Notes: generated from the letters alone by a model not told the origin. Positions 22,508-63,206 are shown, counted from the first letter of the stretch. The stretch is 64,000 nt of DNA from Macrostomum lignano (GCA_002269645.1 NIVC01000349.1:124001-188000), one strand, 5' to 3'. Program-made: numbers and translations.

Positions 22508-23142
<635 letters not shown>

Positions 23143-23282
23143 GTTTTAGAACAAACGAGAAGGCAATAAATTTGCTTTTCCCTTGACCCGCGATATATTT
23201 TGGAAATAATGTCAAATATTAATTAATATTTCGATTTATTTTTTATCCATAGTTTATTAACCAGCAGTTGCAGTCCGCAGCC

Positions 23283-24905
23283 TCAGGGGCAGAAGGCCGA
23301 CATCGCCTGCCGCACCTCATCGTCGCTCAGCTGCCTGCGGGCGACTCCGAAGCACCTCACGCAGAGCCGCTGGGAAGAAGAAGAAAATCGATAAAGATTT
23401 CCGAGCCGCAGTTGCTGCAGTCCCAGCTCCTGAGCCACCCAAGTCGAGTTAGAATAGTAAACTCTCAGCGGCTCTCCGATGGTAGGAGAATCCAAAATGC
23501 GGTTCTTCATCGCCAGCCGAATGTCGCACCAGCTGCCAGCACAGCCGGATCCGCTGAAGTAGTGGTCGTTGTGATGCCTAAGGAAATGCGTTGAGTTTCC
23601 AAGGTCCCGTTGCCGAACATCAAAACTAAATCTGTCCCCAGAATATTTAAAAATCTCAGCATAAAGGCTTTCCCTCCAATCCGGGCGCAAATGGTCGCTC
23701 AGGACCGACAGAAACCGAACCCAGCTGCCGTTGCTCCGAGTCAGCCTGAAGTACATGGTCCACTCTGCTGCGTTCCAGATCGACTCATTGAATGCCACGG
23801 GAGCTCCGACATTGTAGAGCTCCCCATAACTGGCACTTGAATTCTGCTTGAAGCAGGCCCCGTCCTCTGCCGACCTCTCCACGCCGAACTGGTCCTCGAT
23901 GGCGAAGGTGCGCGGGTCCACCAGGTTGTCGAGGCCCCTCCTGAAGTCGAACGCAGCCACAATGCCGTCCGACGCCTCCGTCTTGCACACGAACCTGTGC
24001 CTGCTGTGGCACCTGTCGCTGCGCAGTCGACCAGCTGACAGCGTGACGCAGTTCACAGTCCAGTCCGCACTGTCCGGGTGTCCAGTCTCCCATGCGGGCA
24101 GCTTGTTGTCGTGTTTCCCTGAGAAATCCGTCCACTGGTAGCAGAGCTCGCGACCCGCACTGTCAGGGAAGCAGGGGTTCAGCTTGATGAGGCCGAGCCA
24201 CACCGAGTCGAGCAGCTCTGCCGACTCGCAGCTGTCGATTCCGAAGCTGAGCTTGTTCACAAAGTCCAGCTCAGACTGGGTGAGCACCGACGCCAGCTGC
24301 GACGAGTTTCGCTGGCAGTAGAAGTTGGCCTCGTTGAAGTTGGCCTCAAACTGCGGCATCACGTAGCACTGCTCGTTGTGCAGCCACCAGCCGCTGGGAC
24401 ATCGGCCCTTCGACCGCCACCACAAGTCGACGAGACTGCTGGATTTGGCGCTCAACTTGCACACAAACGGGTGCCGCTCGTGATGCAGCGAGTTGAGCCA
24501 CCACTCACCGTCACTGCGGATCAGAGGCTTGTGAACGCTGTCCAGCTGAGAGAAGTTGTGTCTCTCGAAGCTCCCTACGCCGCCGCCGTCCGTCCACCTG
24601 TAGCTTGTAGGGTCGGCCAGACGGTCGAGGTCGGTGCCGAACAAACCGATCCAGGCGTCTCTGCAGTGAGACAGTCGGCCTACCAGTCGGTTCTCTTGCT
24701 CACTTTGGATGGACGCGAGGTGAGCCCGGTGAGACAGACAAGTCTGCTCGGCCTGAAACCAGTAGTTCGGCTCGCTGAACCACTTGTAGCATGAGTGAGC
24801 TCGGTGTGTCCAGCCGTGTCCGGGACACTGAGCAGAGGCAGCGGTGAGCAGCAGAGCTGCAGTGGCTGCGGCGAGGCAGGCAGCGAGTAGCTGGCGGTGC
24901 TGCAT
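23283..24905 (-). CDS. C-type lectin copy 2: secreted, 2 CTLDs + C-terminal putative LamG/ConA-like module (540 aa)
   Basis: Uninterrupted ORF with a hydrophobic signal peptide. CTLD motifs CYKW..WFQAEQTC..LASI..WIGL..FVCK and CY...C..QLAS..WLGL..C...C...FVCK. AATAAA on the minus strand at about 23253-23258 and 23235-23240. An in-frame upstream ATG lies at 25028. Confidence 0.9.
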   Translation of the reverse strand: MQHRQLLAACLAAATAALLLTAASAQCPGHGWTHRAHSCYKWFSEPNYWFQAEQTCLSHRAHLASIQSEQENRLVGRLSHCRDAWIGLFGTDLDRLADPTSYRWTDGGGVGSFERHNFSQLDSVHKPLIRSDGEWWLNSLHHERHPFVCKLSAKSSSLVDLWWRSKGRCPSGWWLHNEQCYVMPQFEANFNEANFYCQRNSSQLASVLTQSELDFVNKLSFGIDSCESAELLDSVWLGLIKLNPCFPDSAGRELCYQWTDFSGKHDNKLPAWETGHPDSADWTVNCVTLSAGRLRSDRCHSRHRFVCKTEASDGIVAAFDFRRGLDNLVDPRTFAIEDQFGVERSAEDGACFKQNSSASYGELYNVGAPVAFNESIWNAAEWTMYFRLTRSNGSWVRFLSVLSDHLRPDWRESLYAEIFKYSGDRFSFDVRQRDLGNSTHFLRHHNDHYFSGSGCAGSWCDIRLAMKNRILDSPTIGEPLRVYYSNSTWVAQELGLQQLRLGNLYRFSSSSQRLCVRCFGVARRQLSDDEVRQAMSAFCP

Positions 24906-25368
24906 TTGCTGAGTCGGCAATGGGAGTCGCTGATTGAAGCGGCCACTTTGAGTTGCAGATTTGAGCAGACATTTGAGAAGCAACTGTACAAGTCCCTTTA
25001 GCAGCAGCTGTACAAGTCCCTGTAGCATCAGTTGTACTTGATCAAGTGCTTGAAATGAATTATTTTCATTAGTAGTAGCACTAGCTATGACTTACCTGTA
25101 TGTCTATTGACAAGCAGTAAGCACTACTAACAAACACAGATTTCTTCACTGAAGTTGGTTCCGCATTCCAAAAGTCTATAGGTCTACAGGAAGCATTTCG
25201 GCTAAAATGCAGTGCGAGTTTGTAAAATTTTCGGCAGCTGCCTGCATGAAAATAGCTGTCAATTGTTCTTTGAAGTTTTGCCCAGGCATCATTGGGACTT
25301 TCCATTTCATTTCATTTCATTTGAGGTTGGGGTACCTTTATAAGCGCCAAACACCAGGCGACAAAGAT

Positions 25369-26931
25369 CACAGAATATACACAGAATGGCGAATCGGCAG
25401 TTCTCTATGGAAGCGAAAATAAATGCGCTTGCACTACTAACGTTGTGAAGCTGATAAGTAGCTGCGATTTTTTAAACGCAAAGTTGAATGTAAAAGTTGA
25501 GCTCAAGACAGCCTTTGAAAGCTCTGAATCGTCGTTTTGACGCTGCAGATGAATGCTGCGCTATCCTTGTAATTAATTTGTTCAAACGGTACGTCCGCAA
25601 AGTCATGAGCAGTAGTAAGAACTGTTATAACCTCATTGCCATGTACATGTAAGCTAAAAAACAAAAGGAACAAACATATAACAGCAGGTTAAGTTTTAGC
25701 GCTGCACGCAAGGCAGGAAATGCCAGACGCAACAGAAATAGCAAATCTCATGCAATCACACTCATCCTCTTGAACTTCCTCAATTGCTCATTGCAAAATG
25801 CTCACCCGCGCTTTCTCTCCTGAGCCGCAATCCTGTGCCAATTGCACCAATGGTGCAAGCACAGCCTCGAGAACAGCCTCACAATGCCCATCACGCATCT
25901 CTCTGAGTGCTCAGCGCAATGAGTCACAATAATTGGCCTGATGCAATCGGCCAAAAATTTTCTGATTCTGTGTGACACAACAGCATGCATGAACTCTGCC
26001 ACTTCCAGCAATTTGAATTGGCGTTCCATCTCAGTGACAGCTCTGATAACTGCTCTGCTTGGGGTGGCTAAGCTGTCATCCCGCTTGCACTTCAGTCGCA
26101 GGAAGCGTGTCCGAATTGCTTTTCCTTCAGTTCCTGCTGGCACACCTCACACTTGAACTCGGTTTTAAAGAAGCGGATCACAGCAACCAGCCGCCGACAT
26201 ATGCGCACTTCTCGTCATCTAAGTCATCCGATGTAGCAAAGAGCTCATCACCTGCTTCCGTGAGATCTGAGTCACAAGTGTTGCCCTGCAGGTGGACTGG
26301 ATCTGGAGCTTCTTGGCTCACTGCAGCCTTGGATGCTCTCTGGCTGCTGGAAACCGGTGAAATCTAGTGCCCGGCGGCCACTTGCCGGCGTAGTTGGGGC
26401 ATCCGTACGCAGCGCACTGAAGCCTCAAAGCAGACGCAGTTCATGCGAAAACAGTATCACAATAAGCTGCGTATTAAAACTCTAGCAGTATGCCTTCGGT
26501 ATTACATGTAGCACTTTTGAAGCCAAACCTAGCTTCAGCAGCACCAGCCTGGGCCATAGAGAATGCAATACAGCAAAGACAGGCTAGCGCGATCAATAAT
26601 GCATTTGACCTGCATGCTTTCACGCCACGAGCTCGTGCTTGAACGCCCAAGGCATGCTGTCTATGGCACTAACTTAAAGCGCAGCAGAAGGCAGGGCCAG
26701 CCTTAAGGTAGTTTCTAAAAATAGCACAGTTTAGAAGGGGGGTGGGTTGGTTCATCAAGCCTTCCTATATTCTGTGGGACAAACCCGCAATAAATGGTAA
26801 AGAATTGGTAAAGTGCCATTCAGCAGCCTACTTAGTTTCTCTTCACAACAAGAGTAGCCAGTATAGAATATCATTCTTGTGCAAGAAATTTTCTCAAAAT
26901 GCGGGATTCGCCATTCTGTGTATATTCTGTG
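25369..26931 (-). mobile_element. Non-autonomous P-element-like (THAP) DNA transposon
   Basis: Perfect 27-bp TIR CACAGAATATACACAGAATGGCGAATC (25369-25395 and 26905-26931). 8-bp TSD ACAAAGAT/ACAAATAT. Internal THAP start CAAYGCPN...RFHRFP (26318-26428) and a transposase C-terminal remnant CAYVGGWL..CEVC..LATPS..EMERQF (25802-26300). Confidence 0.85.
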
Positions 26932-27619
26932 ACAAATATTGCGAATATTACTGCTGCAATTGTAGTTTAAAAAGGCGTGATAAGCAGAGACTCTTAATTC
27001 ACAAACCCTTACTTCCAATCATTCACCCTCCCTTTGATTCACCAAAAGTTCAGTCACAGACTCCAAATTCACACTCAATTCACCAACTCCAAGATTACAT
27101 GGAATTCAATATGTAGCTCAGTTACATGTAATCTTCCATATTGAGCTACATGTAATATTCCATATTGAGCTACATGTAATCTTCCATATTGAGCTACATG
27201 TAATCTTCCATATTGAGCTACATGTAATCAATTCCATATTGAGCTACATGTAATATTCCATATTGAGCTACATGTAATCTTCCATATTGAGCTACATGTA
27301 ATCTTCCATATTGAGCTACATGTAATCTTCCACATTGAGCTACATGTAATCTTCCATATTGAGCTACATGTAATCTTCCATATTGAGCTACATGTAATCT
27401 TCCACATTGAGCTACATGTAATCTTCCATATTGAGCTACATGTAATCTTCCACATTGAGCTACATGTAATCTTCCATATTGAGCTACATGTAATCTTCCA
27501 TATTGAGCTACATGTAATCTTCCATATTGAGCTACAAGGCCTCAGAGAACAGTGGCTGACTGTGTTGAAGTGTTCTGAAACCAGCTAAGTAGTCAGTACG
27601 AGTAGTATATCAGCGCATA

Positions 27620-27625
27620 TTTATT
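27620..27625 (-). terminator. Candidate kinesin poly(A) signal (AATAAA); paralog at about 7448-7453
   Basis: An AATAAA on the sense strand about 1 kb after the stop, conserved in both copies. Confidence 0.35.
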
Positions 27626-28588
27626 AGTTGTCAATGCAGATGCAGGTAAAAAAACACAAAAGCTTCAATCCGCAGACAATGTCAATCACATTGGGAGGTG
27701 ACAGTCGAGGTCGGGACAGACCGCATGGTTTGGGACAAAATCACCAAATGAATGAAGGAGTCGAGCAGCAGGTACTGAAGGTGACACAAATACTGACAGA
27801 CTGCAGTGCCATCCGGGGTGAAGGCAATCAACTCAGGAAATAAAAAAGCAAAACTGACAAGCAATTCCAATTCGTAAAAAGGCCAATAGCAGCAATTAAT
27901 GGAATACTTTCCTCGGGACTGAAGAACTGCGTGACAAAAAAGACGCACAAAACGCATGACTTACTACTTATAACAAATTGTGAATCAGTAGTACATCACA
28001 ATAAATAAATCAGTTCGATTATGCAACAGAGAAGATTGTTGGAACTGTGACTGGGGAATGAATGCAGATTAACTGGGGACTGGCTGGGACTGAAACTGGT
28101 TGTGGGGACTCGAGGCTGATCGGCTTTGATTGACAGGTGACTGAACATTGCTGAGGTGATCAGCAATGGGAATTGGACTGATGCAGCACAGAAACTTGCA
28201 GGCTCAGTGGGGTTTCGCCCGTAGAGAGGCTGATGGAGAAGCTGGAGAGGCTGATGGGGAAGCTGGAGAGAATGATGAGGAAGCTGGACAGGCTGATGGA
28301 GAAGCTGGAGAGGCTGATGGGGAAGCTAGAGAGGCTGAAGGGGAAGCTGGAGAGGCTGATAGAGAAGCTGGAGAGGCTGATGGGGAAGCTAGAGAGGCTG
28401 AAGGGGAAGCTAGAGAGGCTGATGGGGAAGCTGGAGAGGCTGATGGGAAAGCTGGAGAGGCTGATGGGGAAGCTGGAGAGACTGATGAGGAAGCTGGAGA
28501 GGCTGATGAGGAAGCTGGAGAGGCTGATGAGGAAGCTGGAGAGGCTGATGGAGAGGCTGATGGAGAACTCCGAACGAGAGCCGCAGCC

Positions 28589-29170
28589 TCATTTTCCAGC
28601 CTTCATCTGCTGCGACGCCCTCCTCCGCGGCTGCAGCACCTTGTCGTGCCTGACGAACAGGCCGTGGCGGGCCCTGCACCTGAAGTACTTGACGCCCTTC
28701 ACCGAGCCGTCGTTGCGGCCCTCAGGCTGGTCCAGTTCCACCCCCACCCAGGTGCCCGCCGCGAACTGGGTGGGGCCGCAGAACCTCACGTGACCCGGCA
28801 GCCTCGCGCCCTGCGGCTGCTGCACCAGACACGGCTCACCCGGCTTCAGCCAGGCTGGCGGCGCGGTGTCCACCCTGCCGGAGCCGCTAAGGTCCTGTCG
28901 GGAGCCGAAGGCTGACGCGCTGTCGGAGAACTCCTCGTCACCGCCTCCGCCGTTCGGCGCCTTCTGGGCGGCCCGCTTGGGGCTCTGCAGCAGGCGGGTG
29001 AGGCGGACAAGGTCCTCGCCTTCGCCGGCCTCCGCGGCCTCCTGCGGCTGCTCCGCCGCGGTGCTCAACGGCGGGGGCGGCGGCTGCGTCAGCGACGGAG
29101 CTTCCGGGGGCTCAGCGGGTGGCGGCTGCGCGGTCTCGAGGACTGCGGAGTCCACGGACTGCGGCACCTC
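28589..29170 (-). CDS. KIF13: KIF13 terminal exon with CAP-Gly domain
   Basis: [40 protein letters not shown]...GLFVR; stop at 28589. Confidence 0.95.
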   Translation of the reverse strand, partial: EVPQSVDSAVLETAQPPPAEPPEAPSLTQPPPPPLSTAAEQPQEAAEAGEGEDLVRLTRLLQSPKRAAQKAPNGGGGDEEFSDSASAFGSRQDLSGSGRVDTAPPAWLKPGEPCLVQQPQGARLPGHVRFCGPTQFAAGTWVGVELDQPEGRNDGSVKGVKYFRCRARHGLFVRHDKVLQPRRRASQQMKAGK

Positions 29171-32100
29171 CTGAGAGCAGCAGGTTTGAAATCCCATCTT
29201 ACTGATTCCCCACTCAGATCCCACCTGACTAATTCCCCACTCAGATCCCACCTGACTGATTCCCCACTCAGATCCCACCTGACTGATTCCATACTCAGAT
29301 CCCGTCTGACTGATTCCCCACTCACATCCCGTCTGATTGATTCCCTCACATCCCACCTGACCGATTCCCTCACATCCTCACCTGACCAATTCCCTCACAT
29401 CCCACCTGACCGATTCCCTCACATCCCACCTGACCGATTCCCTCACGCCCTCACCTGCTGCTGGAAGGCCGCCCACGAGGTGTCCCTGTCCAGGTACATG
29501 GACTGCGTCAGCTGTGCCCTCTCCGACTTGCTCTTCCGCATCCGCCCGCCGCAGTCCTCGTTGAAGGGATTCCGGCGCCGGCTGCCCCCGTCATCGCCGT
29601 CGCTGTCTTCAGACGCCGCGTCGCCGCCGCGGTCGGGGAAGTCCGCCTCGCCGAGGAAGTCGCCGCCGGGGCCGCCACGGTGACCGCCGAAGCTGGCGGC
29701 CTCCTCAGCCAGCGGCTTCATGGGAGTCAGCAGCAGCGAGGACCGCGACATCAGCCCGCCTGCGCCTCCGCTGCCTCCACCGCTGCCTCCGCTGCCTCCG
29801 GCTCCGCCAAGGACTCCGGCAGGGTGCGAGGACAGCGGGCTGATCAGGGGGTTCTTGGCCGCTGCTGACGCCGGGTTGGAAGGGAGCGGAGGGGGGCGGG
29901 GGTCTGCAGAGCTCTGACGTCTGACATTCACCAGTCATGCCGTCTAACATCCACTGACATTCACTAGTCATGCTGTCTGACATTCACCAGTCATGCCGTC
30001 TGACATCCACTGACATTCACCAGTCATGCTGTCTGACATTCACTGACATTCACCAGTCATGCGTCTGACATTCACTGACATTCACCAGTCATGCCGTCTG
30101 ACATCCACTGACATTCACCAGTCATGCCGTCTGACATCCACTGACATTCACAAGTCATGCCGTCTGACATCCACTGACATTCACCAGTCATGCCGTCTGA
30201 CATCCACTGACATTATTTACATCTGTCTCTAACACCCTCCCTTCACACTCTCCCTCCCACACCCTCCGTCACATTCGCATTTCATCAAGCCACAAACTTC
30301 ATAACAAAGAAGAACAAGAGCAATAAAAACGGAAAAAGTTAAACTAAAATGAACAAATAAAGGTCAAATTACTGAAAAGCGCGCAAATGTGTACATATTT
30401 AGCCTACTGGTCATAAGTAGCATAGCGCGCTTCGAAGTTTTCAGACTGAGACCTGAACGGGAAGGGAGAGTTGGGATTCCCTACTTTCCGCATGCTGCAC
30501 TGCTACTCACAGTAGTAAGCACCTGATACAGGAGTTGTCAGTTCATGCGGCATGCTAAAATAGATTCATATGCATTTCACCTACTGACAGTACTGCATGG
30601 CTACCAAAATAAACACAATAGTCAGATATCGAATCCGACTTATGGAAATATATAATTATTGGCAAATGAATTATTATAAGTGGCACAGTGCGAGTTAAAA
30701 TGCTAATACACTAATTGGGTGCAGGGCATTAGTAAGTCTGGACTAATGCTGAGCTGCTGCGATGCTGAGGCAGCTCGTGCGATGCATCATCTCAGACTCA
30801 CTCAGAGTATCTCAGCCTCACTCAGAGTATCTCAGACTGACTCAGAGTATCTCAGTCTCACTCAGAGTATCTCAGTCTCACTCAGAGTATCTCAGTCTCA
30901 CCCAGAGTATCTCAGTCTCACCCAGTGTATCTCAGTCCACTTAAAGTATCTTAGTCTCACCCAGAGTACCTCAGTCTCACTCAGAGTATCTCAGTCCCAC
31001 CCAGAGTATTTCAGTCTCACTCAGAGTATCTCAGTCTCACCCAGAGTATCTCAGTCTCACTCAGAGTATCTCAGTCTCACCCAGAGTATCTCAGTCTCAC
31101 CCAGTGTATCTCAGTCCACTTAAAGTATCTCAGTCTCACTCAGAGTACCTCAGTCTCACTCAGAGTATCTCAGTCCCACCCAGAGTATCTCAGTCCCACC
31201 CAGAGTATCTCAGTCTCACTTAGAGTATCTCAGTCTCACCCAGAGTACCTCAGTCTCACTCAAAGTATCTCAGTCTCACTCAGAGTATCTCAGTCTCACC
31301 CAGAGTACCTCAGTCTCACTTAGAGTATCTCAGTCTCACCCAGAGTACCTCAGTCTCACTTAGAGTATCTCAGTCTCACCCAGAGTACCTCAGTCTCACT
31401 TAGAGTATCTCAGTCTCACCAAGAGTATCTTAGTCTCACTCAGAGTATCTCAGTCTCACCCAGAGTATCTCAGTCTCACTCAGAATGCACAAGCATCTTG
31501 AGTATGAGTTATTTTCAGTTAGTTCACAACACTGACAGCCTACTGCAACAGAAATATTTGAGCAATGCGACTGACATGAGGGGATGGGGTGGGCAGTGAG
31601 ACGGCAGTCTGAGTTCTCATAAATCTCACAGACGGCTGCCTCTCTCGGGTAAAAATAAAAAATAAATCAATATTGATGCGCCAAAATAAAACCGGAATGA
31701 GAAAACACGACTCCGTCAGCTGATTAACTGAATTTCTGGCGCCGATTCAAATATTTACCTATTGGCCAGTACTTTCTAATCTTTTGCGTGTTCAAGTTAA
31801 GAAAGTTGGGGCGGCTGCCTGCAAACAGGTTGGCAGGACAAGATTTCTTGTCATGATGTTCTTGTGAAAATGAAAATTGCGATTTTTAAGGCATTGCTGG
31901 TAGGTAAGAATTTGGTAAAAGCTCAAAGACAACGCTCAAAGAGAAAAGAGAAAAGAGAAAGGAGAGGGAGATAAGACAAGAGAGATCAGGAGGGAGTTGG
32001 GAGAAGAGAGAGAAGAGAGGAGAGATAAGAAAGGCGAGATGAGAGATGAGAGAGGAGAGATGAGAGGAGAGATGAGAGATGAGAGAGGGGATATGAGAGA

Positions 32101-35100
32101 TGAGAGAGGAGAGATGAGAGAGGGGAGCTGAGAGAGGAGAGATGAGAGATGAGAGATGAGAGAGGAGAGATGAGAGAGGAGAGAGTAGAGATGAGAGAGG
32201 GGAGATGAGGGATGAGAGATGAGAGATGAGAGAGGAGAGATGAGAGATGAGACAGGAGGGATGAGAGATGAGAGGAGAGATGAGAGATGAGAGAGGAGAG
32301 AGGAGAGATGAGAGAGGGGAGATGAGAGAAGAGGAGCAGCTGCCCTCACCGCAATCGTATGCAGAAAATAAAAGTAAAAGTTGCAGTTTATGAAACAGGA
32401 CAGGAACTTCTGCAGCACCGCAACCTCATGCTAAAGAACACTGTGATTTTTAATATTTAATATTTATGAGTAACTGTTCGAAAGAATATTTAAAAACTGC
32501 TCGGGTTGGTAAAACAGCGTACTTGTTCAAGATTAACAATATCTAGTAAAACAGATTATATAAAACTTAAATTACTTAAATTGAAAATGGAAAATTTATG
32601 CAATACCTTCAAGAGGCTCCGGGTGTTCTAAAAGCAGACAGCAGATTAAGCTTCAGATTTAGAACTCTTGCTATAGGTGAACAGTAGAGGGGGCAGGGGA
32701 GGGTACAGAGGGGAAAGCAGAGGGTACAGAGGGGACAGGAGAGGGTACAGAGGGGACAGGAGAGGGTACAGAGGGGACAGGGTAGGGTACAGAGGGGACA
32801 GGAGAGGGTACAGAGGGGACAGGAGAGGGTACAGGGGGGGAGTAGAGGGTACACATGGTTCCCCAAGCAGCGCACAGATCCCGAATTCGAACCCGCGACC
32901 ACAGGCACGCACGCACAGGCTCGCACACTTACTGCCAACTGGGCCAATCAGAGCGCTTGGCGGTTCGGCTCTGCGCAGTGCGGCGTGCAGGTTCTGCACA
33001 GAAGCGCTGGGCTGCTGCTGCGGCTGCTGCTGCTGCGGGGGGACCGGCGGCCCGCCAGCGGCCGCGGCGACAGAGGCTGCCTGACCACCGGCAAGATAGC
33101 CGGGCTCATTCAATTTGAGCAGACTCAGCGAGCCAAGCGATACGGATCGAATCATTTGCTGAAATTTGGCGTAGCGAAATCATGTTCGATATTAGCTACT
33201 GACTGACTGCGATGAGTAGCCAAGTAAAACATTTTAAGACCGTTTCTAATATACAGGGTAAATTTTACTTACGAATATCTTAGCTTCTTAAAACCTTATT
33301 AACTGTCTATGGTGAAAACCCTGGCTTGGCTATCATGATATAAACTGTTTATCTTATGATATAAACAGTCCATAAACAGTTTATCCTACTCTAAACGGCC
33401 ACACAGAAACCACACAGCCGCAACTCACCCCACCGTCCGCGCCCATGACCTGCATGGACTTTCTGGTCGCTCTGGTTTTTGCATTCTTCGAGAATTTCAC
33501 CGCAGCCTCCTGCCTGGCCTTCTCCTCCCGAAGGAAGTACTCAACAGCCGACACTGCGCTCAGGTACTGCTTGATGTAGGTCTCGCTGTCGGGCTGAGCT
33601 GGTTTCCAGCTTCCGTTTGATGAGGCACCTGCGGCAGATGAGGCGGCTGACCCGGGAGCGGCCGGTGCGGCGGAATTTCCGTCAGTCAGTTTGGAGTCGC
33701 TGATGGCGGAGGACTCGGCCAGCAGTGAGCAGCTGCTTGAGTCCTCTGCCGGGCCTGCCAGGGAGCTGATGGCGTCTGATGAGGCTGCGGCCAGCACTGC
33801 CAGGGACTTCCGGTCCTCCACTTCCCCAGTTGCTGGGGGAATGCTGGACACAATCTGATAGGTGATGCCCGTCTCCGAGATGAGGTCCTGGGGACATGAT
33901 GGGGCCGGTTGCGTGCTCAGATCCCAAGTCCTCAGATCCCAGCTCAGCCAGTCCTCAGATCCCAAGTCCTCAGATCCCAAGTCCTCAGATCCCAAGTCCT
34001 CAGATCCCAGCTCAGCCAGTCCTCAGATCCCAAGTCCTCAGATCCCAGCTCAGCCAGTCCTCAGATCCCAAGTCCTCAGATCCCAGCTCAGCCAGTCCTC
34101 AGATCCCAGCTCAGCCAGTCCTCAGATCCCAGCTCAGCCCGTCCTCAGATCCCAAGTCCTCAGATCCCAGCTCAGCCAGTCCTCAGATCCCAGCTCAGCC
34201 AGTCCTCAGATCCCAAGTCCTCAGATCCCAAGTCCTCAGATCCCAAGTCCTCAGATCCCAAGTCCTCAGATCCCAAGTCTTCAGATCCCAAGTCCTCAGA
34301 TCCCAAGTCTTCAGATCCCAAGTCTTCAGATCATAAGTCCTCAGATCCCAAGTCTTCAGATCCCAAGTCCTCAGATCCCAAGTCCTCAGATCCCAAGTCC
34401 TCAGATCCCAAGTCCTCAGATCCAAAGTCCTCAGATAGCTCAGCCAGTCCTCAGATCCCAAGTCCTCAGATCCAAAGTCCTCAGATCCCTGCTCAGCCAG
34501 TCCTAAGATCCCAAGTCCTCAGATCCCAAATCCTCAGATTTGAAGTCCTCAGATCCCAGCTCATCCCAGTCCTCAGATCCCAGCTCAGCCAGTCCTCAGA
34601 TCCCAGCTCATCCCAGTCTTCAAATCCCTTCAAACAAAGAGCTTCATGCACTTTAGAATACACAAAAATAAAGTTGACAACATCAATACAACAACTAACG
34701 TAAGAGACTCACTTCAGCTGAACAATGACAGGTTCATGCAAGAAAAATAGCAGCAATTTACTAAAACTGCCGCTCAAAGTAGGCTAATGAAGGCGTGCAA
34801 AATGCAAAACAGAAAAATTACTATCTAAACTAGATTTTAAGAAGTACAAAGGTTATTAGAGTTTAAATTGGATATAATGAGTTTAAAAGTGAACTGAATG
34901 CCACCTACCAGCTGCTGTCAGTGACGAGAATATAAAATGGCTTCATCTTCCCAACCAAACTTATCGAGTCTGGGCAGCACATCCTTGATTGAAATCTCCC
35001 GTTTTAAACCAATTTTCAAGAAGACACACTGAACAAAATTTTGATGATTCTTTAATCTGCATCCTGTCTTTCTTAGAATTGGAGTTAGTCTGTTTCACAC

Positions 35101-38100
35101 TCACCTGTCAGTCTGTATGCCTTACCTGTCAGCCTGTTTTACACCAAGTGGTCAGCACAGCACCTGTAAGTCTGTATAATCTGGCTGTCAGTCTGTATAA
35201 TCTGCCTGTCAGTCTGTATAGTCTGCCTGTCAGTCTGTGTAATCAGCCTGTCAGTCTGTATAATCTGCCTGTCAGTCTGTGCAATCTGCCTGTCAGTCTG
35301 TATAATCTGCCTGTCAGTCTGTAAAACCTGCCTGTCAGTCTGTAAAATCACATATCAGTCTGTATAATCTGCCTGTCAGTCTGTATAATCTGCCTGTCAG
35401 TCTGTATAGTCTGCCTGTCAGTCTGTGTAATCAGCCTGTCAGTCTGTATAATCTGCCTGTCAGTCTGTGCAATCTGCCTGTCAGTCTGTATAATCTGCCT
35501 GTCAGTCTGTAAAACCTGCCTGTCAGTCTGTAAAATCACATATCAGTCTGTATAATCTGCCTGTCAGTCTGTATAATCTGCCTGTCAGTCTGTATAGTCT
35601 GCCTGGCAGTCTGTGTAATCAGCCTGTCAGTCTGTATAATCTGCCTGTCAGTCTGTGCAATCTGCCTGTCAGTCTGTATAATCTGCCTGTCAGTCTGTAA
35701 AACCTGCCTGTCAGTCTGTAAAATCACATATCAGTCTGTATAATCTGCCTGTCAGTCTGTATAATCTGCCTGTCAGTCTGTATAGTCTGCCTGTCAGTCT
35801 GTGTAATCAGCCTGTCAGTCTGTATAATCTGCCTGTCAGTCTGTGCAATCTGCCTGTCAGTCTGTATAATCTGCCTGTCAGTCTGTAAAACCTGCCTGTC
35901 AGTCTGTAAAATCACATATCAGTCTGTATAATCTGCCTGTCAGTCTGTAAAATCTGCCTGTCAGTCTGTATAATCTGCCTGTCAGTCTGTGTAATCTGCC
36001 TGTCAGTCTGTATAATCTGCCTGTCAGTCTGTGTAATCTGCCTGTCAGTCTGTGTAATCTGCCTGTCAGTCTGTATAATCTGCCTGTCAGTCTGTATAAT
36101 CTGCCTGTCAGTCTGTGTAATCTGCCTGTCAGTCTGTATAATCTGCCTACTGTTAGTCTGTGTAATCTGCCCGTCAGTCTGTAAAATCTGCCTGTCAGTC
36201 TGTAAAATCTGCCTGTCAGTCTGTATAATCTGCCTGTCAGTCTGTATAATCTGCCTACTGTTAGTCTGTAAAATCTGCCTGTCAGTCTGTAAAATCTGCC
36301 TGTCAGTCTGTAAAATCTGCCTGTCAGTCTGTAAAATCTGCCTGTCAGTCTGTAAAATCTGCCTGTCAGTCTTTATTCCCGCACAGGAGAATACAGCAAC
36401 CCCACAGCAATGCCACTAAAAGCAGCAAAAAAGCAGCAGTGCAAAAGCAAGCAGAGAGGTGCAGACGGGAGGTGACAACATCGACTCACGCGGATCGGAT
36501 CGGCAGAGGCCGGACTCACATAGGCTCTCATGTAGCCAAACAGGGCACTTCTGATGCCCTTTGACTTGTACACCGAAACGCACGCCCGCTTCCTCAGCAC
36601 AATATCCATTGGAGCTGGGTGCGAGATTCGAACCCTGGCCCGCACAATCAGGTAGATGAGCTCGTTATTTCCCGTGATCCGATTCAAATAGATCGAGTCG
36701 TGCAGCGAAGCGTCCCACTGGCAGATGACGCAGCAGTCTTTGTCCAGACTCCGCATGATGGGGACTTGCACAAACTCGCTGTTGTGCTCTTTGGGCAGCT
36801 GGGAGTTCACACCTGCTGGCGGCAGCTCAAGCCGCTGGTGATGGTCAGGCTGCAGATCTAAGAACAGCACCGGGATGTGCTCCTCCATGCCCAGCGGGGG
36901 GTCCCAGTCAGCTGGAGCTCCGGGCACACAGGAGTGCGGCCTGGGCACCAGCACAGCCTCCTTCTCCACCGTCATTCGGCTCCACTGCTCCATCAGCGAC
37001 CGCTCCCTGGCCTCATCTGCCGCGGTCTTCACCGGCTTGGAGGTGATGAGGCTTAACTGAGACTGCAGATGTCCCTGACGCCTGGAGACGGCCTCTCTCC
37101 ATTTGTCCCTGAGGCGGGTCAGGTCCTCTTCCTGGTAGCTGTCGAGGCCTCTCTGCATGCTGCGGTCCCGGCGGACAATGCAGCCGACCGACACGTCCGT
37201 GATGCGCTCGCAGATCACCGGCAGGCTGCCCGACTCCGGACCGCTGACGGGACGAACTCGGATAAGCAGCCGGCGGGACTGGCCGTGCTTGAGGCGGTAC
37301 ACTCCGCCTGGGGTACGTTTGAAGGGCGCGATGGGGTACGTTTGAAGGGCGCGATGGTGTACGTTTGAAAGGCGCGATGGGGTACGTTTGAAGGGCGGCG
37401 GCGTGTTGGGGTGGCTGATGGGGTCTGTCTGATGAGACCTGTCTGATGCGGTTTGTCTGATGGGGTCTGGGTGATAGGGTCTGGGTGATGGGGTCTGGGT
37501 GATGGGGTCTGGGTGATGGGGTCTGGGTGATGGGGTCTGGGTGATGGGGTCTGGGTGATGGGTTCTGGGTGATGGGGTCTAGGTGATGGGGTCTGTGTGA
37601 TGGGGTCTGTGTGATGGGGTCTGTGTGATGGGGTCTGTGTGATGGGGTCTGTGTGATGGGGTCTGTGTGATGGGGTCTGTGTGATGGGGTCTGGGTGATG
37701 GGGTCTGGGTGATGGGGTCTGGGTGATGGGGTCTGTGTGATGGGGTCTGTGTGATGGGGTCTGGGTGATGGGGTCTGTGTGATGGGGTCTGTGTGATGGG
37801 GTCTGTGTGATGGGGTCTGGGTGATGGGGTCTGGGTGATGGGACCTGAATGATGGGGTCTGGGTGATGGGACCTGAATGATGGGGTCTGGGTGATGGGAC
37901 CTGGATGATGGGGTCTGTGTGATGGGGTCTGGGTGATGGGGTCTGGGTGATGGGACCTGGATGATGGGGTCTGGGTGATGGGACCTGCCTGATGGGTCTG
38001 TCTATCAGTGCCTGTTTTTCCGCCCATCAGCCAGAAGCTAAGCTTCTGACAAGTGCCTCTACAGCTGCCATGAGCCAAGCAGGGTGGCTCAGCTAACTAA

Positions 38101-40116
38101 CATACCCCAGGTGTGACCTTGGCACTCGCTTGATAGAAATATCCTAAATTTAAACTCAGATAAATTTTATTGTGAGAAGTGAGAGGAGACAGCTGAGAGG
38201 GGAGAGGAGACAGCTGAGAGGGGAGAGCAGACAGCTGAGAGGGGAGAGCAGACAGCTGAGAGGGGAGAGCAGACAGCTGAGAGGGGAGAGGAGACAGCTG
38301 AGAGGGGAGAGGAGACAGCTGAGAGGGGAGAGCAGACAGCTGAGAGGGGAGAGCAGACAGCTGAGAGGGGAGAGCAGACAGCTGAGAGGGGAGAGCAGAC
38401 AGCTGAGAGGGGAGAGGAGACAGCTGAGAGGGGAGAGCAGACAGCTGAGAGGGGAGAGCAGACAGCTGAGAGGGGAGAGGAGACAGCTGAGAGGGGAGAG
38501 CAGACAGCTGAGAGGGGAGAGCAGACAGCTGAGAGGGGAGAGGAGACAGCTGAGAGGGGAGAGCAGACAGCTGAGAGGGGAGAGCAGACAGCTGAGAGGG
38601 GAGAGGAGACAGCTGAGAGGGGAGAGCAGACAGCTGAGAGGGGAGAGGAGACAGCTGAGAGGGGAGAGCAGACAGCTGAGAGGGGAGAGCAGACAGCTGA
38701 GAGGTGAGAGGAGACAGCTGGGAGCTGCCTGCACCGCATGAAACACAGGAACTAACTACATGTAAAAAGCGCATAAAATGAAGTGGCATTGAGCACAGTG
38801 AGCATGAGAGCGAGTTGTTCAGAAACAGAGTGAGATCAGGTGATCAAATCTGCCAAAGAGACACAGGTGACACAGCACAGTGCACTGCAATCACATGTAC
38901 AGGCACAGAGATAAGAGAGTCACCACAAGACCAACCTGTTTGCCCAAATAAAGGCAGTTTAAAATAACCTTTCAACCCACAGATAAGCGAGTTCGCTGAT
39001 TCCGGTGTCACAAAGCCGATCTGAGAATTGCATGCCCTGCCCGCTTGGCAGCATATCTGATGTGATGTCAGCATTCTTTCGGGCTCCGGCGTTTCATGTT
39101 CTCAGTGCCCGATTTTGGGATTTTCATTCTTAGGGGAGATTTTCTTAGGGGCGATTTTTCTGATTAGATTTTCTCAGGGTGACTTTCTCAGATGAGATAA
39201 TCTCAGGGGCGATTTTCTTAGGAGAGATTTTCTCACGGGCGATTTTTTCAGGTGAGATTTTCTCAGGGGCGATGTTCTCTGAGGAGATTTTTTCAGAGGC
39301 GATTTTCTCTGGGGCGATTTACTCAAGGGCGACTTTCCTAGGTGAGATTTTCTCAGGTGAGATTTTCTCCGGTGAGATTTTCTCAGGTGAGATTTTCTCA
39401 GGGGCGATTTTCTCAGGTCGGATTCTCTCAGGGACGATTATTTAGGTGAGATTTTTTCAGGTGAGACTTTCTCAGGTGAGACTTTCTCAGGTGAGATTTT
39501 CTCAGGTGAGACTTTCTCAGGTGAGACTTTCTCAGGTGAGACTTTCTCATGTGAGATTTTCTCAGGTGAGACTTTCTCAGGTGAGACTTTCTCAGGTGAG
39601 ATTTTCTCAGGTGAGACTTTCTCAGGTGAGATTTTCTCAGGTGAGACTTTCTCAGGTGAGATTTTCTCAGGTGAGACTTTCTCAGGTGAGACTTTCTCAG
39701 GTGAGATTTTCTCAGGTGAGACTTTCTCAGGTGAGATTTTCTCAGGTGAGATTTTCTCTGAGGAGATTTTCGAGGCATTAAACAGAAAATTTTTCCGGAT
39801 AATCCCAAAGGCGATTTCTCAACGCAGAATTTCTCTACGCGAAATTTTCGCCCGCAAGCGCCACTGACCAGTGGGGATGACGTCCTTCTCCCTGCCCTGC
39901 CGGTCCCTCTGCGTGGGGTGCTGGATCTCCACAGGCAGGTACTGCCCGTTCTCGCTCAGCTCCTGGATGCACAGCCACATCTCCAGGCGGCGGCAGTACT
40001 CGGACCAGTTGTCCCCGATGCGCTCGCCCCGGACCTCCGCGCCGTTGCTGCGGTTGCCGTACACCTGGGGGACATTGGGACTGCTGTGCATGGGACAGAC
40101 AGACAGACAGAAACTA

Positions 40117-40151
<35 letters not shown>

Positions 40152-40156
40152 AACTA

Positions 40157-40187
<31 letters not shown>

Positions 40188-40192
40188 AACTA

Positions 40193-40245
<53 letters not shown>

Positions 40246-40260
40246 CATAGACAGACACTA

Positions 40261-40329
<69 letters not shown>

Positions 40330-40344
40330 CATAGACAGACACTA

Positions 40345-40409
<65 letters not shown>

Positions 40410-40410
40410 C

Positions 40411-40469
<59 letters not shown>

Positions 40470-40518
40470 CAGACAGACAGACAGACAGACATACAGACAG
40501 ACAGACAGACAGACACGC

Positions 40519-40559
<41 letters not shown>

Positions 40560-40596
40560 CACAGACAGACACACAGACAGACACACAGACAGACAC

Positions 40597-40631
<35 letters not shown>

Positions 40632-40634
40632 CAA

Positions 40635-40687
<53 letters not shown>

Positions 40688-44115: not shown

Positions 44116-44158
<43 letters not shown>

Positions 44159-44169
44159 CACAGACAGGC

Positions 44170-44238
<69 letters not shown>

Positions 44239-44243
44239 CACAA

Positions 44244-44280
<37 letters not shown>

Positions 44281-44285
44281 CACAA

Positions 44286-44338
<53 letters not shown>

Positions 44339-44343
44339 CACAA

Positions 44344-44380
<37 letters not shown>

Positions 44381-44388
44381 CACAAAGG

Positions 44389-44421
<33 letters not shown>

Positions 44422-46945: not shown

Positions 46946-46998
<53 letters not shown>

Positions 46999-59787: not shown

Positions 59788-61403
59788 TTTAGTTTTCTTT
59801 TATGGTTTATTTATGTACAGTACAAAATAAGATAGAACATTAGGTTTCGCATCCACAAGAGACAGTTACTTTAAAATCTATTTTCGTGCGTCAAAATTCA
59901 AAGAGGTAGTGATTCTTAATTTACTGGCAAAGTCATAGCCTTTAGGTATAGCTTAATTAAAGGCCTAAATTATAGCCAGGGCCAGGACAGTAGGACATTA
60001 AGCAAAAAACTTCTCTAGATCACAATTTTTCACCAAAAGATGTCAAAGCACGCAAACTTAGCTTAAACTTTAAAAATGTAAATAATACAGTAAAGCAGTA
60101 AAGTAAAGGTCGATTCTGTGTCAAAATACCTGAACTACTTAGTGATCAATACTCATCAAGCATGTTAACAAGCTCTATAGAAATTTAGATAAATTAATTA
60201 CGTTAAAAAAGTGCCACGTAAACAATAAAATTTCAACAAATATTCTTGATTTGTCGCGACATTAACAAAGAACAATTTTAAAAAACTTTAAAAAGCACTT
60301 TTTAATATTAGGTACACTTTCCCACTGTGTGCTTTAAATAAAATGAAACCGTTTCGTTCGACTTTGACACGATGGACATCAGATCAAAATAAAATCTATA
60401 TGGCACAAGCATCACAGCTCTATTTAAAACTACTGTTGGGCACTTGGAATTCAGGCTGGTGCCGTATATACAGTACTACCCTATTCGCCGAAATTGCCAT
60501 GGGTACTGTTCCTAAAGATAAAACCAATTATATTTTACCAATAGCTGGCGTATGAAAATGCAACTGCAGCTCAGCCTTTTCTGTCTTGAATTAAGCCGTG
60601 GATACAAAGGACCCCGACAGAATTATTATTTACTAACAGAATCAGCAAGCTGATGGAGAGATGCCACAAGCTAGTTTGTCAGCTGCAGATGGTTAAACGT
60701 ACACGTAACCCGCGAAACTATGAGACTATTTTAACACTACTTACAGGGATATATTATTGTTTAACGACTGGGAACTGAAATCTTGGCTTTGTGCGGCCCC
60801 CACCCGTTTAAATGTTCTCTTGGAGCCTGCATGCAATGCTACGGATCGAGTAAATGCGGTTATTTTACATGTACATGTATGTATCATCCGTATCATCTGA
60901 AACAGCAAACTTTAAAGACACCTTCAATTTCCATGCATACGACTAGTAAAATGTTACCAGTGAGTAAAGCGACTATCCAATTGCACTCGTAATCTATGCA
61001 CAATACACTAAATCAGTGTAAATCTTTATAAAAGGAATTTCGTTGCGTCTTCCCTGGTAGTAGCTTTAATCCGAAATCTGTAACACACGCCTGTGCCAAT
61101 GCTTGTGAGATCAGCCAGCATGAGCGATCCGCAGCGACTAATCGACATGTGCACACGGACGGACTTCATATCTGGCTAACTGACAGCTGCGCCTGTCTCA
61201 AACAAAGCTGAGTATCACAATGCTGCGGCTACAACTGCAGCAGAGCCTCAGCTGAGGCCGCGCCACTCAATCTGGCGAGATTCCACGCCTTTCACACATT
61301 CCAGCAGCAGCTCGAGTGGATAAATGCCGACTCGCAATGTCTGCTCAAATCTGCAACTCAAAGTGGCCGCTCTAATCAGCGACTCCCATTGCCGACTCAG
61401 CAA

Positions 61404-63206
61404 ATGCAGCACCGCCAGCTACTCGCTGCCTGCCTCGCCGCAGCCACTGCAGCTCTGCTGCTCACCGGCGCCTCTGCTCAGTGTCCCGGACACGGCTGGA
61501 CACACCGAGCTCACTCATGCTACAAGTGGTTCAGCGAGCCAAACTACTGGTTTCAGGCCGAGCAGACGTGTCTGTCTCACCGGGCTCAGCTCGCGTCCAT
61601 CCAAAGTGAGCAAGAGAACCGACTGGTAGGCCGACTGTCTCACTGCAGAGACGCCTGGATCGGTTTGTTCGGCACCGACCTCGACCGTCTGGCCGACCCT
61701 ACAAGCTACAGGTGGACGGACGGCGGCGGCGTAGGGAGCTTCGAGAGACACAACTTCTCTCAGCTGGACAGCGTTCACAAGCCTCTGATCCGAAGTGACG
61801 GTGAGTGGTGGCTCAACTCACTGTATCACGAGCGGCACCCGTTTGTGTGCAAGTTGAGCGCCAACTCCAGCAGTCTCGTCGACTTGTGGTGGCGGTCGAA
61901 GGGCCGATGTCGCAGCGGCTGGTGGCTGCACGACAAGCAGTGCTACGTGATGCCGCAGTTTGAGGCCAACTTCAACGAGGCCAACTTCTACTGCCAGCGA
62001 AACTCGTCGCAGCTGGCGTCGGTGCTCACCCAGTCTGAGCTGGACTTTGTGAACAAGCTCAGCTTCGGAATCGACAGCTGCGAGTCGGCAGAGCTGCTCG
62101 ACTCGGTGTGGCTCGGCCTCATCAAGCTGAACCCCTGCTTCCCTGACAGTGCGGGTCGCGAGCTCTGCTACCAGTGGACGGATTTCTCAGGGAAACACGA
62201 CAACAAGCTGCCCGCATGGGAGACTGGACACCCGGACAGTGCGGACTGGACTGTGAACTGCGTCACGCTGTCAGCTGGTCGACTGCGCAGCGACAGGTGC
62301 CACAGCAGGCACAGGTTCGTGTGCAAGACGGAGGCGTCGGACGGTACCTCCACACCTGACGGAGGCGTCACCTCTGCACCTGACGGAGGCGTCACCTCCA
62401 CACATGACGGAGGCGTCACCTCCACACATGACGGAGGCGTCACCTCCACACATGACGGAGGCGTCACCTCCACACCTGACGGAGGCGTCACCTCTGCACC
62501 TGAAGGAGGCGTCACTCCACCTGTGGACGGCCTCGTGGCTGCGTTCGACTTCAGAAGAGGCCTCGACAACCTGGTGGACCCGCGCGCATTCGCCATCGAG
62601 GACCAGTTCGACGTGGAGAGGTCGGCAGAGGCCGGGGCCTGCTTTAAGATGAATGGTAGCATCTACCAGGAATATTTCGGTGTCGGAGGGTTTACATCCT
62701 ACGCAAAATCTGTTTTCTCAACTGGAGAATGGACTATGTACTTCAGGCTGCAGCAAGCCAATAAGAACCGAATGAACTTTTTCTCTGTTCTGTCGGACAG
62801 GCCGAGTCACTATCCATACCTTGTTCATGGCTTCTGGCACAATTCGACAGGCGCATTTGTCCTTGAAGTGAACACGATGGTGCCTGGAAATGCCACGCAC
62901 TCGTTTATCTATTTTAACCGCCACGTGTACGATGCTCACCAGTGCCGTGGATCTCCTTGCGACATCACACTGACAATGAAAGACCAAGTTTTGAGCTCTA
63001 GCATCAATGGCGAGTCCCCTGCAAGCAAGCGCTACTCTGAGAAGTTCGACTCGCCGTTTGAACTCGGACGTCAACAGCTGCAGATTGGGTACGGGTACAG
63101 CTACTTCGATAAGAACCCGGGCCTTTGCGTGAGATGCTTCGGACTGGCTGAGAAGCAACTGAGACAAGAAGATGTCGGGAAAGCGATGTCTGTCCATTGT
63201 TCCTGA
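61404..63206 (+). CDS. C-type lectin copy 3: secreted, 2 CTLDs + Thr/Pro-rich repeat linker + divergent C-terminal module (600 aa)
   Basis: Uninterrupted ORF from ATG 61404. The 5' ~950 nt is near-identical to copies 1 and 2. 24-bp coding repeats at 62341-62530. Confidence 0.9.
   Translation: MQHRQLLAACLAAATAALLLTGASAQCPGHGWTHRAHSCYKWFSEPNYWFQAEQTCLSHRAQLASIQSEQENRLVGRLSHCRDAWIGLFGTDLDRLADPTSYRWTDGGGVGSFERHNFSQLDSVHKPLIRSDGEWWLNSLYHERHPFVCKLSANSSSLVDLWWRSKGRCRSGWWLHDKQCYVMPQFEANFNEANFYCQRNSSQLASVLTQSELDFVNKLSFGIDSCESAELLDSVWLGLIKLNPCFPDSAGRELCYQWTDFSGKHDNKLPAWETGHPDSADWTVNCVTLSAGRLRSDRCHSRHRFVCKTEASDGTSTPDGGVTSAPDGGVTSTHDGGVTSTHDGGVTSTHDGGVTSTPDGGVTSAPEGGVTPPVDGLVAAFDFRRGLDNLVDPRAFAIEDQFDVERSAEAGACFKMNGSIYQEYFGVGGFTSYAKSVFSTGEWTMYFRLQQANKNRMNFFSVLSDRPSHYPYLVHGFWHNSTGAFVLEVNTMVPGNATHSFIYFNRHVYDAHQCRGSPCDITLTMKDQVLSSSINGESPASKRYSEKFDSPFELGRQQLQIGYGYSYFDKNPGLCVRCFGLAEKQLRQEDVGKAMSVHCS

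Follow-up and report, generated by a model that had tools for sequence, protein, structure and literature searches.

The 64-kb window analyzed here, NIVC01000349.1:124001-188000 of Macrostomum lignano (assembly GCA_002269645.1, Mlig_3_7), contains one intronless gene in three copies, c1, c2 and c3. Protein searches pointed to M. lignano, and locus L001, reached through the annotated protein P0002, matched positions 51368-64000 of the window at 100%, which fixed its coordinates. The gene encodes a signal peptide and two C-type lectin-like domains (CTLDs), which we call the front, followed in some copies by a repeat linker, and then by a hinge and a C-terminal module. Further copies were reached via annotated paralogues, their cluster members and their loci, giving a total of ten copies at seven loci on four contigs. 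The copies are old duplicates, and a 5′ tract homogenized by gene conversion ends at the boundary of the C-terminal domain. We consider it likely that recurrent ectopic gene conversion homogenizes the 5′ part over old modules that stay with their loci, and such overwriting would explain why the fronts are all at least 98% identical. With its two CTLDs, mucin-like linker and putative β-sandwich without known relatives, the family is previously undescribed and species-restricted.

In a three-way nucleotide alignment, c1, c2 and c3 were 95-100% identical over a stretch that starts shortly before the ATG and closes with CTLD2. It is followed by a 24-nt repeat insert found only in c3 and then by ~120 nt at 85-97% identity. 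Past the hinge, the identity of c2 and c3 dropped to 35-55%. A two-rate likelihood scan placed the c2/c3 break at alignment codon 511 (2-lnL, or log-likelihood, support over codons 510-513), with 18 differences in 1052 bases (1.7%) to the left and 273 in 556 (49%) to the right. The break is the K codon of GACFK, at nt 23847 in c2 and nt 62648 in c3. These coordinates are identical to those given in a first-pass annotation, which had also estimated ~35-40% amino acid identity past the break; the measured value was 39.7%. Both frames remained open there, and the scaffold motifs it had described were present (EWTMYFRL, SVLSD, C.GS.CDI, LCVRCFG and AMS..C). The ratio of nonsynonymous to synonymous divergence (dN/dS) past the break was 0.31 and six cysteines are conserved in the c2 and c3 modules, indicating that the module is a real, constrained domain. 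A tblastn search with the c2 hinge and module matched the c3 locus with E = 2.6e-59; the two tails are thus homologous and not unrelated sequence.

The step was also visible at sites where the protein does not change. In codons for the same residue, 4 of 141 four-fold degenerate sites differed between c2 and c3 in the front versus 15 of 32 in the module (Fisher p = 9e-10). Over all pairs, the share of such sites that differed was 2-3% for the front versus 25-63% for the module; p-values for full-length pairs ranged from 1e-6 to 1e-13. This contrast indicates that the step is one of neutral divergence and not of protein-level selection. By the Nei-Gojobori method, the front dS (synonymous divergence) was 0.019-0.030 in every pair (314 codons), with a dN/dS of 0.14-0.79, and the hinge dS was 0.04-0.40. 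The modules fall into type A, which includes those of c1 and c2, and type B, which includes that of c3. Module dS was 0.19 for c2 and the type A copy L2b, and the remaining type A pairs gave values of 0.53-0.98; whenever c3 was compared with a type A module, it was >2 or saturated. The step in dS from front to module was roughly 100-fold.

Histories of fronts and modules

Distances among the ten copies were flat in the front, at 0.6-2.1% regardless of relationship, whereas those in the module were hierarchical. Module distances were 0-1.6% for the pairs c3/L7, L2a/L5a and L2b/L5b, 7.8% for c1/c2, 11-18% within group A1 (c1, c2, L2b, L6), 20-32% among groups A1, A2 (L2a) and A3 (L3), and 47-55% for type A versus type B. 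There were 35 singleton and 6 informative sites in the front; all four gametes were found in 6 of the 15 pairs of informative sites, and the groupings that these sites define cut across the module lineages. The hinge gave yet another topology, in which L2b joins its neighbor L2a, 8 kb away, whereas the L2b module joins that of c2. The first-pass annotation had proposed that recombination or gene conversion set a homogenized constant part before old, different modules, and the dS step, the discordant patterns and the four-gamete failures bear this out. It had named congruent trees, or no more than two module types, as grounds for giving the proposal up; the distance patterns of front and module disagreed (as read from distance matrices, not formal trees), and at least four or five module lineages were present across the seven loci. 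An abrupt change in dS, a tract more similar than its flanks and conflicting relationships of front and module together characterize partial concerted evolution, and each of them was observed here.

The c1/c2 pair separates the age of the loci from that of the fronts. The modules of the two copies differed at 12 of 153 sites (7.8%) and the fronts at 18 of 936 (1.9%; Fisher p = 3e-4), while their flanks differed by 4-15%, and the c1 front resembled that of c2 no more closely than it did fronts on other contigs. Module divergence matches that of the flanks and front divergence is lower, indicating that the modules are as old as the loci and that the fronts have been overwritten since. For this reason, we prefer conversion of the front over swapping of the module. 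The idea of a "swappable" module is thus reversed: the modules track the loci, and it is the front that is replaced.

Movement of the modules is nevertheless the alternative with the most to recommend it, and we hold it to be improbable. Different modules would repeatedly be put behind one resident front by cassette-type conversion or reciprocal crossing-over, either within the linker minisatellite or within the hinge. A 24-nt minisatellite with a copy number of 0-20 lies directly 5′ of the hinge, and L2b, which lacks CTLDs, shows that recombination occurs in this interval, but the c1 and c2 modules co-diverged with their flanks and the fronts did not. Module-only fragments near L2a and L2b might be taken for cassettes; however, their identity to any intact module is only ~78%, and they are decayed remnants and not recent donors. 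Type A modules do seem to have traded patches. Reciprocal exchange would be costly among copies that lie in both orientations and on different contigs, and the 5′ ends of the shared tract vary, as expected if the front is converted.

The endpoints of the shared tract were examined pair by pair. The 3′ break lay at alignment codons 511-513 in eight pairs, including pairs within type A (c2-L3 and L3-L6). In pairs involving L2a, whose Pro-rich linker is its own, it lay at codons 314-316, and for c2-L2a it lay at codons 535-537. The preferred 3′ endpoint coincided with the first predicted strands of the module in both of two low-confidence structural models. At the 5′ side, the point upstream of the ATG at which homology ended varied among pairs (68, 99, 175 or 269 nt). 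Several endpoints of this kind are what repeated conversion events would leave. At the far end of the gene, homology ceased ~10 nt past the stop codon, and the 3′ flanks were unrelated between copies. Retrocopying as the origin of this pattern was rejected, as the homology comprises ~70-270 nt of 5′ sequence plus the coding sequence with variable 5′ ends and no shared poly(A) tail. Variable 5′ ends fit conversion tracts better than the fixed end of a transcript or transposon; retrocopying may still have dispersed the copies in the first place.

Under the conversion model, old duplicates of M. lignano-specific germline genes for secreted proteins would have the 5′ part of one copy recurrently overwritten with that of another, non-allelic copy. 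The overwritten tract, ~1.05-1.25 kb long, would begin 70-270 bp upstream of the ATG and reach as far as the linker or hinge. It would end where the C-terminal domain begins or slightly ahead of it, so that this domain keeps the true age of the copies (dS between 0.2 and saturation). Probably the stop reinforces itself, as a module divergence of 25-50% would bar heteroduplex extension. Selection may, in addition, favor keeping the modules different. The minisatellite linker, with 0-20 repeats, would lie in the interval where recombination occurs, and the deletion in L2b also ends there.

Variation within modules and other accounts of the step

Type A modules are nucleotide mosaics, in which near-identical framework blocks, synonymous sites included, alternate with saturated, indel-bearing patches, and the nearest neighbor of each module shifts along its length. 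At type A polymorphic sites, the runs shared by some pairs exceeded the length expected from permutation (p = 0.0004 for L2b-L2a and p = 0.001 for c2-L3), although this test is confounded by rate differences along the domain. A Sawyer-type run test that included c3 had been discarded because framework conservation within type A inflates the runs, and the repeat restricted to type A was used instead. These patterns suggest an exchange of short patches between modules of type A. In the three closest type A pairs, dS was 0.14-0.22 in the framework versus 0.22-0.31 in the patches, and dN/dS was 0.3-0.5 in the framework versus 1.2-1.3 in patches that had been picked by their variability, after the fact. 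Positive selection on the patches would therefore be a lead and not a demonstration. The first-pass term "hypervariable" accordingly suits the patches within type A modules and not the rest of the module.

The patches bear on a second alternative, a recent burst of whole-gene duplication (~1-2% ago) after which targeted hypermutation, strong positive selection or both made the modules diverge very fast. Such a burst would suit the star-like front relationships with mostly singletons, and also the dN/dS of the patches in the closest type A pairs, where dS is close to that of the framework. Selection on the protein, however, cannot produce a module that is 10-30 times more diverged than the front at four-fold sites of same-residue codons. 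In recent duplicates, the module was nominally more diverged than the front by a small margin at most (1.3% front and 1.6% module for c3/L7, 0.9% and 1.6% for L2a/L5a, 0% and 0% for L2b/L5b), indicating that hypermutation is not at work at present. The c1-c2 module divergence equaled that of the neutral flanks while the front lay below it, and the paralogues sit at different loci without shared flanking homology. We therefore regard such a burst as highly improbable.

An error of assembly, in which a repeated 1.1-kb front was collapsed, chimerically joined or over-polished before unrelated 3′ sequences, deserves attention in this genome. Mlig_3_7 is a Canu assembly with PacBio, Illumina and 454 input, contains 180 Mb of non-repetitive sequence in blocks that are duplicated at 95% identity or more (PMC5730564), and represents a highly repetitive, hard-to-assemble species that the title of PMC10733133 calls a neopolyploid. 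The stops and frameshifts in L3, L6 and L7 could be consensus errors as well as marks of real pseudogenes. Nonetheless, the same in-frame junction was found in ten copies on four contigs, and each combination of front and module recurred at a second locus (c3/L7, L2a/L5a, L2b/L5b). The hinge was homologous in all copies, which leaves no foreign join, and each front kept private substitutions (the 35 singletons). The NCBI gene models P0002, P0003 and P0007 span the junction, and the Mlig_3_7 annotation is described as built from transcripts in a genome-guided way (PMC5730564). The 1.1-kb front is presumably also shorter than typical PacBio reads. Misassembly of the junction, against which the first-pass annotation had itself cautioned, thus appears extremely improbable.

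Purifying selection alone, acting strongly on the CTLDs and weakly on the tail without any recombination, is scarcely credible: the front dN/dS is below 1 and the tail tolerates much amino acid change, but neither the synonymous sites nor the 70-270 nt of non-coding upstream sequence are any less uniform than the coding front, the step is abrupt (support interval of 3-4 codons) and not graded, and the same CTLDs have drifted to 46% identity in the distant paralogue P0005, indicating that the front is not intrinsically slow.

Several points weigh against front conversion over old modules as set out here. The sample is seven loci from one assembly, and the conflict between front and module was judged from distance matrices. 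Short-read correction is assumed to be able to over-homogenize near-identical paralogues slightly. Mlig_3_7, although a PacBio assembly, also drew on short-read data (PMC5730564). Pseudogenes are frequent, and relaxed constraint could account for part of the variability. The annotated proteins retrieved did not include the intact type A copy c2, whose upstream sequence beyond 68 nt is shared with no other copy, so that its expression is uncertain and it may not be expressed. Four modules gave no relevant Pfam match at E up to 10, a profile search of the PDB returned two weak, irrelevant matches only (E up to 10), and the AlphaFold models of the module had low confidence, with a pLDDT (predicted local distance difference test) of 45.0 and a pTM (predicted template modeling score) of 0.43 in one and 52.5 and 0.56 in the other. 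The confounded run test and the post hoc choice of patches count on the same side.

The protein family and known systems

The predicted protein consists of a signal peptide, two non-canonical CTLDs, an optional mucin-like linker of 8-residue repeats, a conserved 41-residue hinge and a C-terminal domain of ~185 residues, a putative β-sandwich. Pfam identified only Lectin_C (PF00059), in two stretches of c2 at 72.3 bits (gathering cut-off 22.6; E = 6.7e-20), and the same was found for c3 and c1. Classical C-type lectins carry EPN or QPD together with WND at Ca2+ site 2. By eye, neither EPN/QPD nor WND was found in CTLD1, and CTLD2 reads W-E-T-G-HPD-S and L-RSD-R-C, which departs from the classical motifs (compared with the canonical pattern, not by structural alignment). 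Classical Ca2+-dependent sugar binding by these CTLDs is therefore doubtful. The protein reads as secreted, and on direct reading several N-x-S/T sites and the six conserved cysteines of the module fit an extracellular domain.

The module retrieved only M. lignano paralogues in a word-indexed search of 5.8e9 proteins, made with a single sequence and with a profile. An exhaustive HMMER profile search of 1.84e9 (1.84 billion) representative proteins found nothing outside M. lignano save P0006 (E = 4e-6, six stretches), which was rejected as spurious because it is a translated tandem repeat. Of the two AlphaFold models, the second was built from six alignment rows with c3 first, and the start sequences of the two are 48% identical. 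Both models are all-β and have 12-13 strands plus a helix at the C-terminus; in the hinge-plus-module sequence, residues 1-47 had a pLDDT of <50 and almost no predicted secondary structure. The top Foldseek matches in the PDB were all concanavalin A (ConA)-like (probability ~1, E ~2e-4), with TM-scores of 0.3-0.47 and a root-mean-square deviation of 6-12 Å, and comprised the clostridial neurotoxin Hc fragment (its lectin-like N-terminal subdomain), the trans-sialidase lectin domain, legume lectin and galectins. A ConA-like jelly roll is thus no more than a plausible candidate fold for the module. The ConA/LamG-like assignment made earlier agrees with the all-β pattern, terminal helix and top matches of the models, but it is only weakly supported, given the low model confidence, the low TM-scores and the absence of a Pfam match.

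In its behavior the family matches partial concerted evolution, and it is a member of none of the families with which we compared it (MHC, KIR/Ly49, NLR, conotoxin, FREP/CREP and Sp185/333). In MHC class I/II, KIR/Ly49 and plant NLR clusters, conversion likewise homogenizes one part while the ligand-contacting part keeps old lineages, with a sharp switch in synonymous divergence, discordant trees of the parts and frequent pseudogenes. Unlike in those clusters, the boundary here lies inside a single exon and not at an exon/intron border, the lectin-like region is the conserved part while the divergent part has no detectable sequence relatives, and the copies are dispersed over >400 kb and other contigs. 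Precursors of Conus conotoxins share a very sharp constant/variable boundary in a secreted precursor whose constant part is N-terminal; their variable part is a short peptide thought to be positively selected, whereas here it is a 185-residue domain with an overall dN/dS below 1. Together with the saturated dS, this value indicates a module that is old and not fast-evolving.

The first-pass annotation had likened the family to FREP/CREP and Sp185/333; the likeness is one of analogy only, as the defining features of both are absent. The Biomphalaria FREP/CREP proteins are also a secreted, modular, lectin-type multigene family of an invertebrate for whose diversity gene conversion has been invoked. 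They have, however, one or two N-terminal immunoglobulin superfamily (IgSF) domains and a C-terminal fibrinogen (FBG) domain or CTLD, whereas our CTLDs are N-terminal and constant. Pfam found no IgSF or fibrinogen domain here, and no sequence similarity to FREP/CREP was detected. Somatic diversification was not seen either, although no search was aimed at it. Sp185/333 (SpTransformer) genes are clustered, have their coding sequence largely in one exon and share 5′ ends, mosaic elements and nearby repeats that may promote recombination. Those proteins are Gly/His-rich and disordered and vary by presence or absence of elements, in contrast to the folded, Cys-containing domains (by direct reading), deep module lineages and patches seen here; no similarity to Sp185/333 was found, since only M. 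lignano paralogues passed the E-value cut-offs of the homology searches. Simple and tandem repeats make up 15% of the M. lignano genome (PMC5730564), so that the repeats beside c2 and c3 carry little weight for this likeness. The best PDB sequence matches to the front were tandem CTLDs of the mannose-receptor family (FcRY/PLA2R and DEC-205; E = 4e-20 to 1e-12), and those to DEC-205 ran over both CTLDs and the inter-domain spacer. The members of that family are membrane receptors with 8-10 CTLDs plus cysteine-rich and FNII domains, in contrast to the two CTLDs and the unrelated, putative β-sandwich at the end of the protein here.

The function of the protein might, speculatively, be extracellular binding, with the CTLDs as a constant "handle" and the ConA-like module as a variable "head". 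A more specific and rather unlikely possibility is a germline-diversified recognition system built the reverse way from known lectin systems, with a CTLD handle kept uniform by conversion for effector or anchoring purposes and a taxon-restricted, ConA-like variable surface. Its variability would come from old lineages, patch exchange and positive selection on surface patches; the linker minisatellite and hinge would form the recombination boundary, and L2b types would be free "heads". The conversion boundary within a single exon is unusually clean, being resolved to a few codons, and the family would offer a tractable case in which one half of a gene is kept uniform and the other diverse within one exon. 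Innate recognition in platyhelminths is poorly charted, and M. lignano is amenable to transgenesis and RNAi. If the genes are unexpressed or mostly decaying, the family would be a tidy textbook case of partial concerted evolution in a repeat-rich neopolyploid genome. We found no paper that mentions Mlig009022, Mlig019923 or Mlig011059 and none on gene conversion among Macrostomum paralogues; judged by their titles, papers that pair M. lignano with "C-type lectin" mainly concern adhesion proteins.

Copies, coordinates and surroundings

Coordinates of the gene copies, their parts and associated features (positions without a prefix are those of the 64-kb window)
Feature	Position	Strand	Remarks
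c1	1040-2449	-	truncated copy; c2-homologous part 1231-2449
Reverse transcriptase (RT) open reading frame (ORF)	314..1246	+	Pfam RVT_1, E = 7e-12; adjoins c1 truncation point
c2	23283..24905	-	intact single-exon coding sequence, 540 aa + stop
c2 signal peptide	24831..24905	-	MQHRQLLAACLAAATAALLLTAASA then QC; read by eye, no predictor
c2 CTLD1	24456..24827	-	Pfam Lectin_C; without EPN/QPD or WND
c2 CTLD2	23982..24401	-	HPD at EPN/QPD position, RSD at WND position
c2 hinge	23847..23969	-	41 aa, DGIVAAFDF...GACFK; last segment within the homogenized tract
c2 variable module	23286..23846	-	type A1, 187 aa; models all-β with C-terminal helix
c2 upstream shared stretch	24906..24973	-	68 nt before the ATG, common to other copies
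c3	61404..63206	+	intact single-exon coding sequence, 600 aa + stop
c3 linker	62346..62520	+	24-nt minisatellite, 7.3 copies (Tandem Repeats Finder, TRF); encodes mucin-like DGGVTS(A/T)(P/H)
c3 hinge	62526..62648	+	41 aa; 4 residues differ from c2
c3 variable module	62649..63203	+	type B, 185 aa
Tandem segmental duplication	1231..40692	.	unit A 1231-23140 vs unit B 23693-40692, 85-96% nt identity; carries c1 and c2
L7	same contig as window, ~70 kb before it		type B module; TAG at codon 263 (L007 10820-10822)
L3	same contig, ~290 kb beyond window		TAG 40 codons before end (L003 ~11171)
L2a and L2b	NIVC01003537.1		8 kb apart, inverted orientation
L5a and L5b	NIVC01001483.1		near-identical counterparts of L2a/L2b, flanks 94-99.9% identical
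L6	NIVC01001950.1		~20 linker repeats, in-frame stop, frameshift, 7-residue deletion in front
L2b / L5b	L002 19447-20241 / L005 19407-20201	- / -	intact 264-aa ORF, both CTLDs deleted in frame
Module-only fragments	L002 13214-13487 and 18573-18728, same in L005	-	no front end; frameshifts; near L2a and L2b

The truncated copy c1 retains the front, the hinge and the first 49 amino acids of a type A1 module, and its frame continues past 1231 through unrelated sequence to a stop at 1040. The end of the RT ORF coincides with the loss of c2 homology at 1231, and c1 was probably interrupted by insertion of a retroelement; the missing 3′ part was not found in positions 1-314 of the window. In c2, a 581-aa ORF from 25028 is an in-frame upstream extension, and the Met of MQHRQLL at 24905 is the start common to all copies. 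The sequence upstream of c2 beyond 24973 is unrelated to all other copies, whereas c1 and c3 share ~175 nt upstream of the ATG (c1 to ~2624, c3 from 61229). The region 24974-25200 upstream of c2 contains a short direct repeat, GGGACTTGTACAG.TGCT, present twice. The counterpart of c3, the NCBI model PAA85076.1 (BOX15_Mlig009022g2), is 99% identical to it and shorter by one linker repeat. Compared with any of the type A modules, the c3 module differed at ~50% of bases; compared with that of its recent duplicate L7, it differed at 1.6%. The hinge was of intermediate divergence, with nucleotide differences of 0.9-10.5% between copies.

At least 4 of the 10 copies are visibly broken (c1, L3, L6 and L7). 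With about half of the copies carrying stops, frameshifts or truncations, these counts indicate that the family turns over by birth and death. The TAG codon of L7 is TTG in c1 and TCG in all other copies, and the stop and frameshift of L6 lie at L006 ~11825-11920. The pair L003/L006 was considered as homeologous and rejected, as homology is confined to the gene and the flanks are not homologous. Gene models are annotated for the c3 and L2a types. The linker has no repeat in c1 and c2, one in L2b, ~6-8 in c3, L7 and L3, and ~20 in L6; the L2a linker is different and Pro-rich.

In the L2b and L5b ORFs, the signal peptide is followed by QCPGHG, then by the last linker repeat, and finally by hinge and type A1 module, with identical sequence at both loci, and the product would be a free secreted module. 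The module-only fragments were 72-79% identical to intact type A modules; they were rejected as recent conversion donors, this low identity to any intact module marking them as decayed. The distant paralogue P0005/P0010 (P0005 at L004 10001-11884) has two CTLDs 46% identical to those of the family and no module, which is replaced by a long, low-complexity tail of Ser/Thr/Pro/Glu-rich repeats. This suggests that two CTLDs with a mucin-like tail were the older architecture.

The units of the segmental duplication that carries c1 and c2 are ~17-22 kb long and full of minisatellites whose lengths differ between units. No homology was found between 2518-6541 (from c1 to unit A) and 24974-27119 (from c2 to unit B). 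The duplication holds 3′ exons of kinesin-3 (KIF1B, DUF3694) at 40342-41622 and 36373-37302 on the - strand, and kinesin plus lectin gene are found duplicated once more at L007, ~70 kb before the window. A (CTGT)n tract begins ~140 nt 3′ of the c2 stop codon, and tandem repeats follow c3 from 63425. Long (CTGT)n-type microsatellites at 40342-40880 (-), 22332-23186 and 44092-44418 give SVCL repeats in translation and extend spurious ORFs. Upstream of c3, inside or beside a kinesin gene, the 2 kb at 58001-60000 have a GC content of 0.26, compared with 0.41-0.65 elsewhere in the window.

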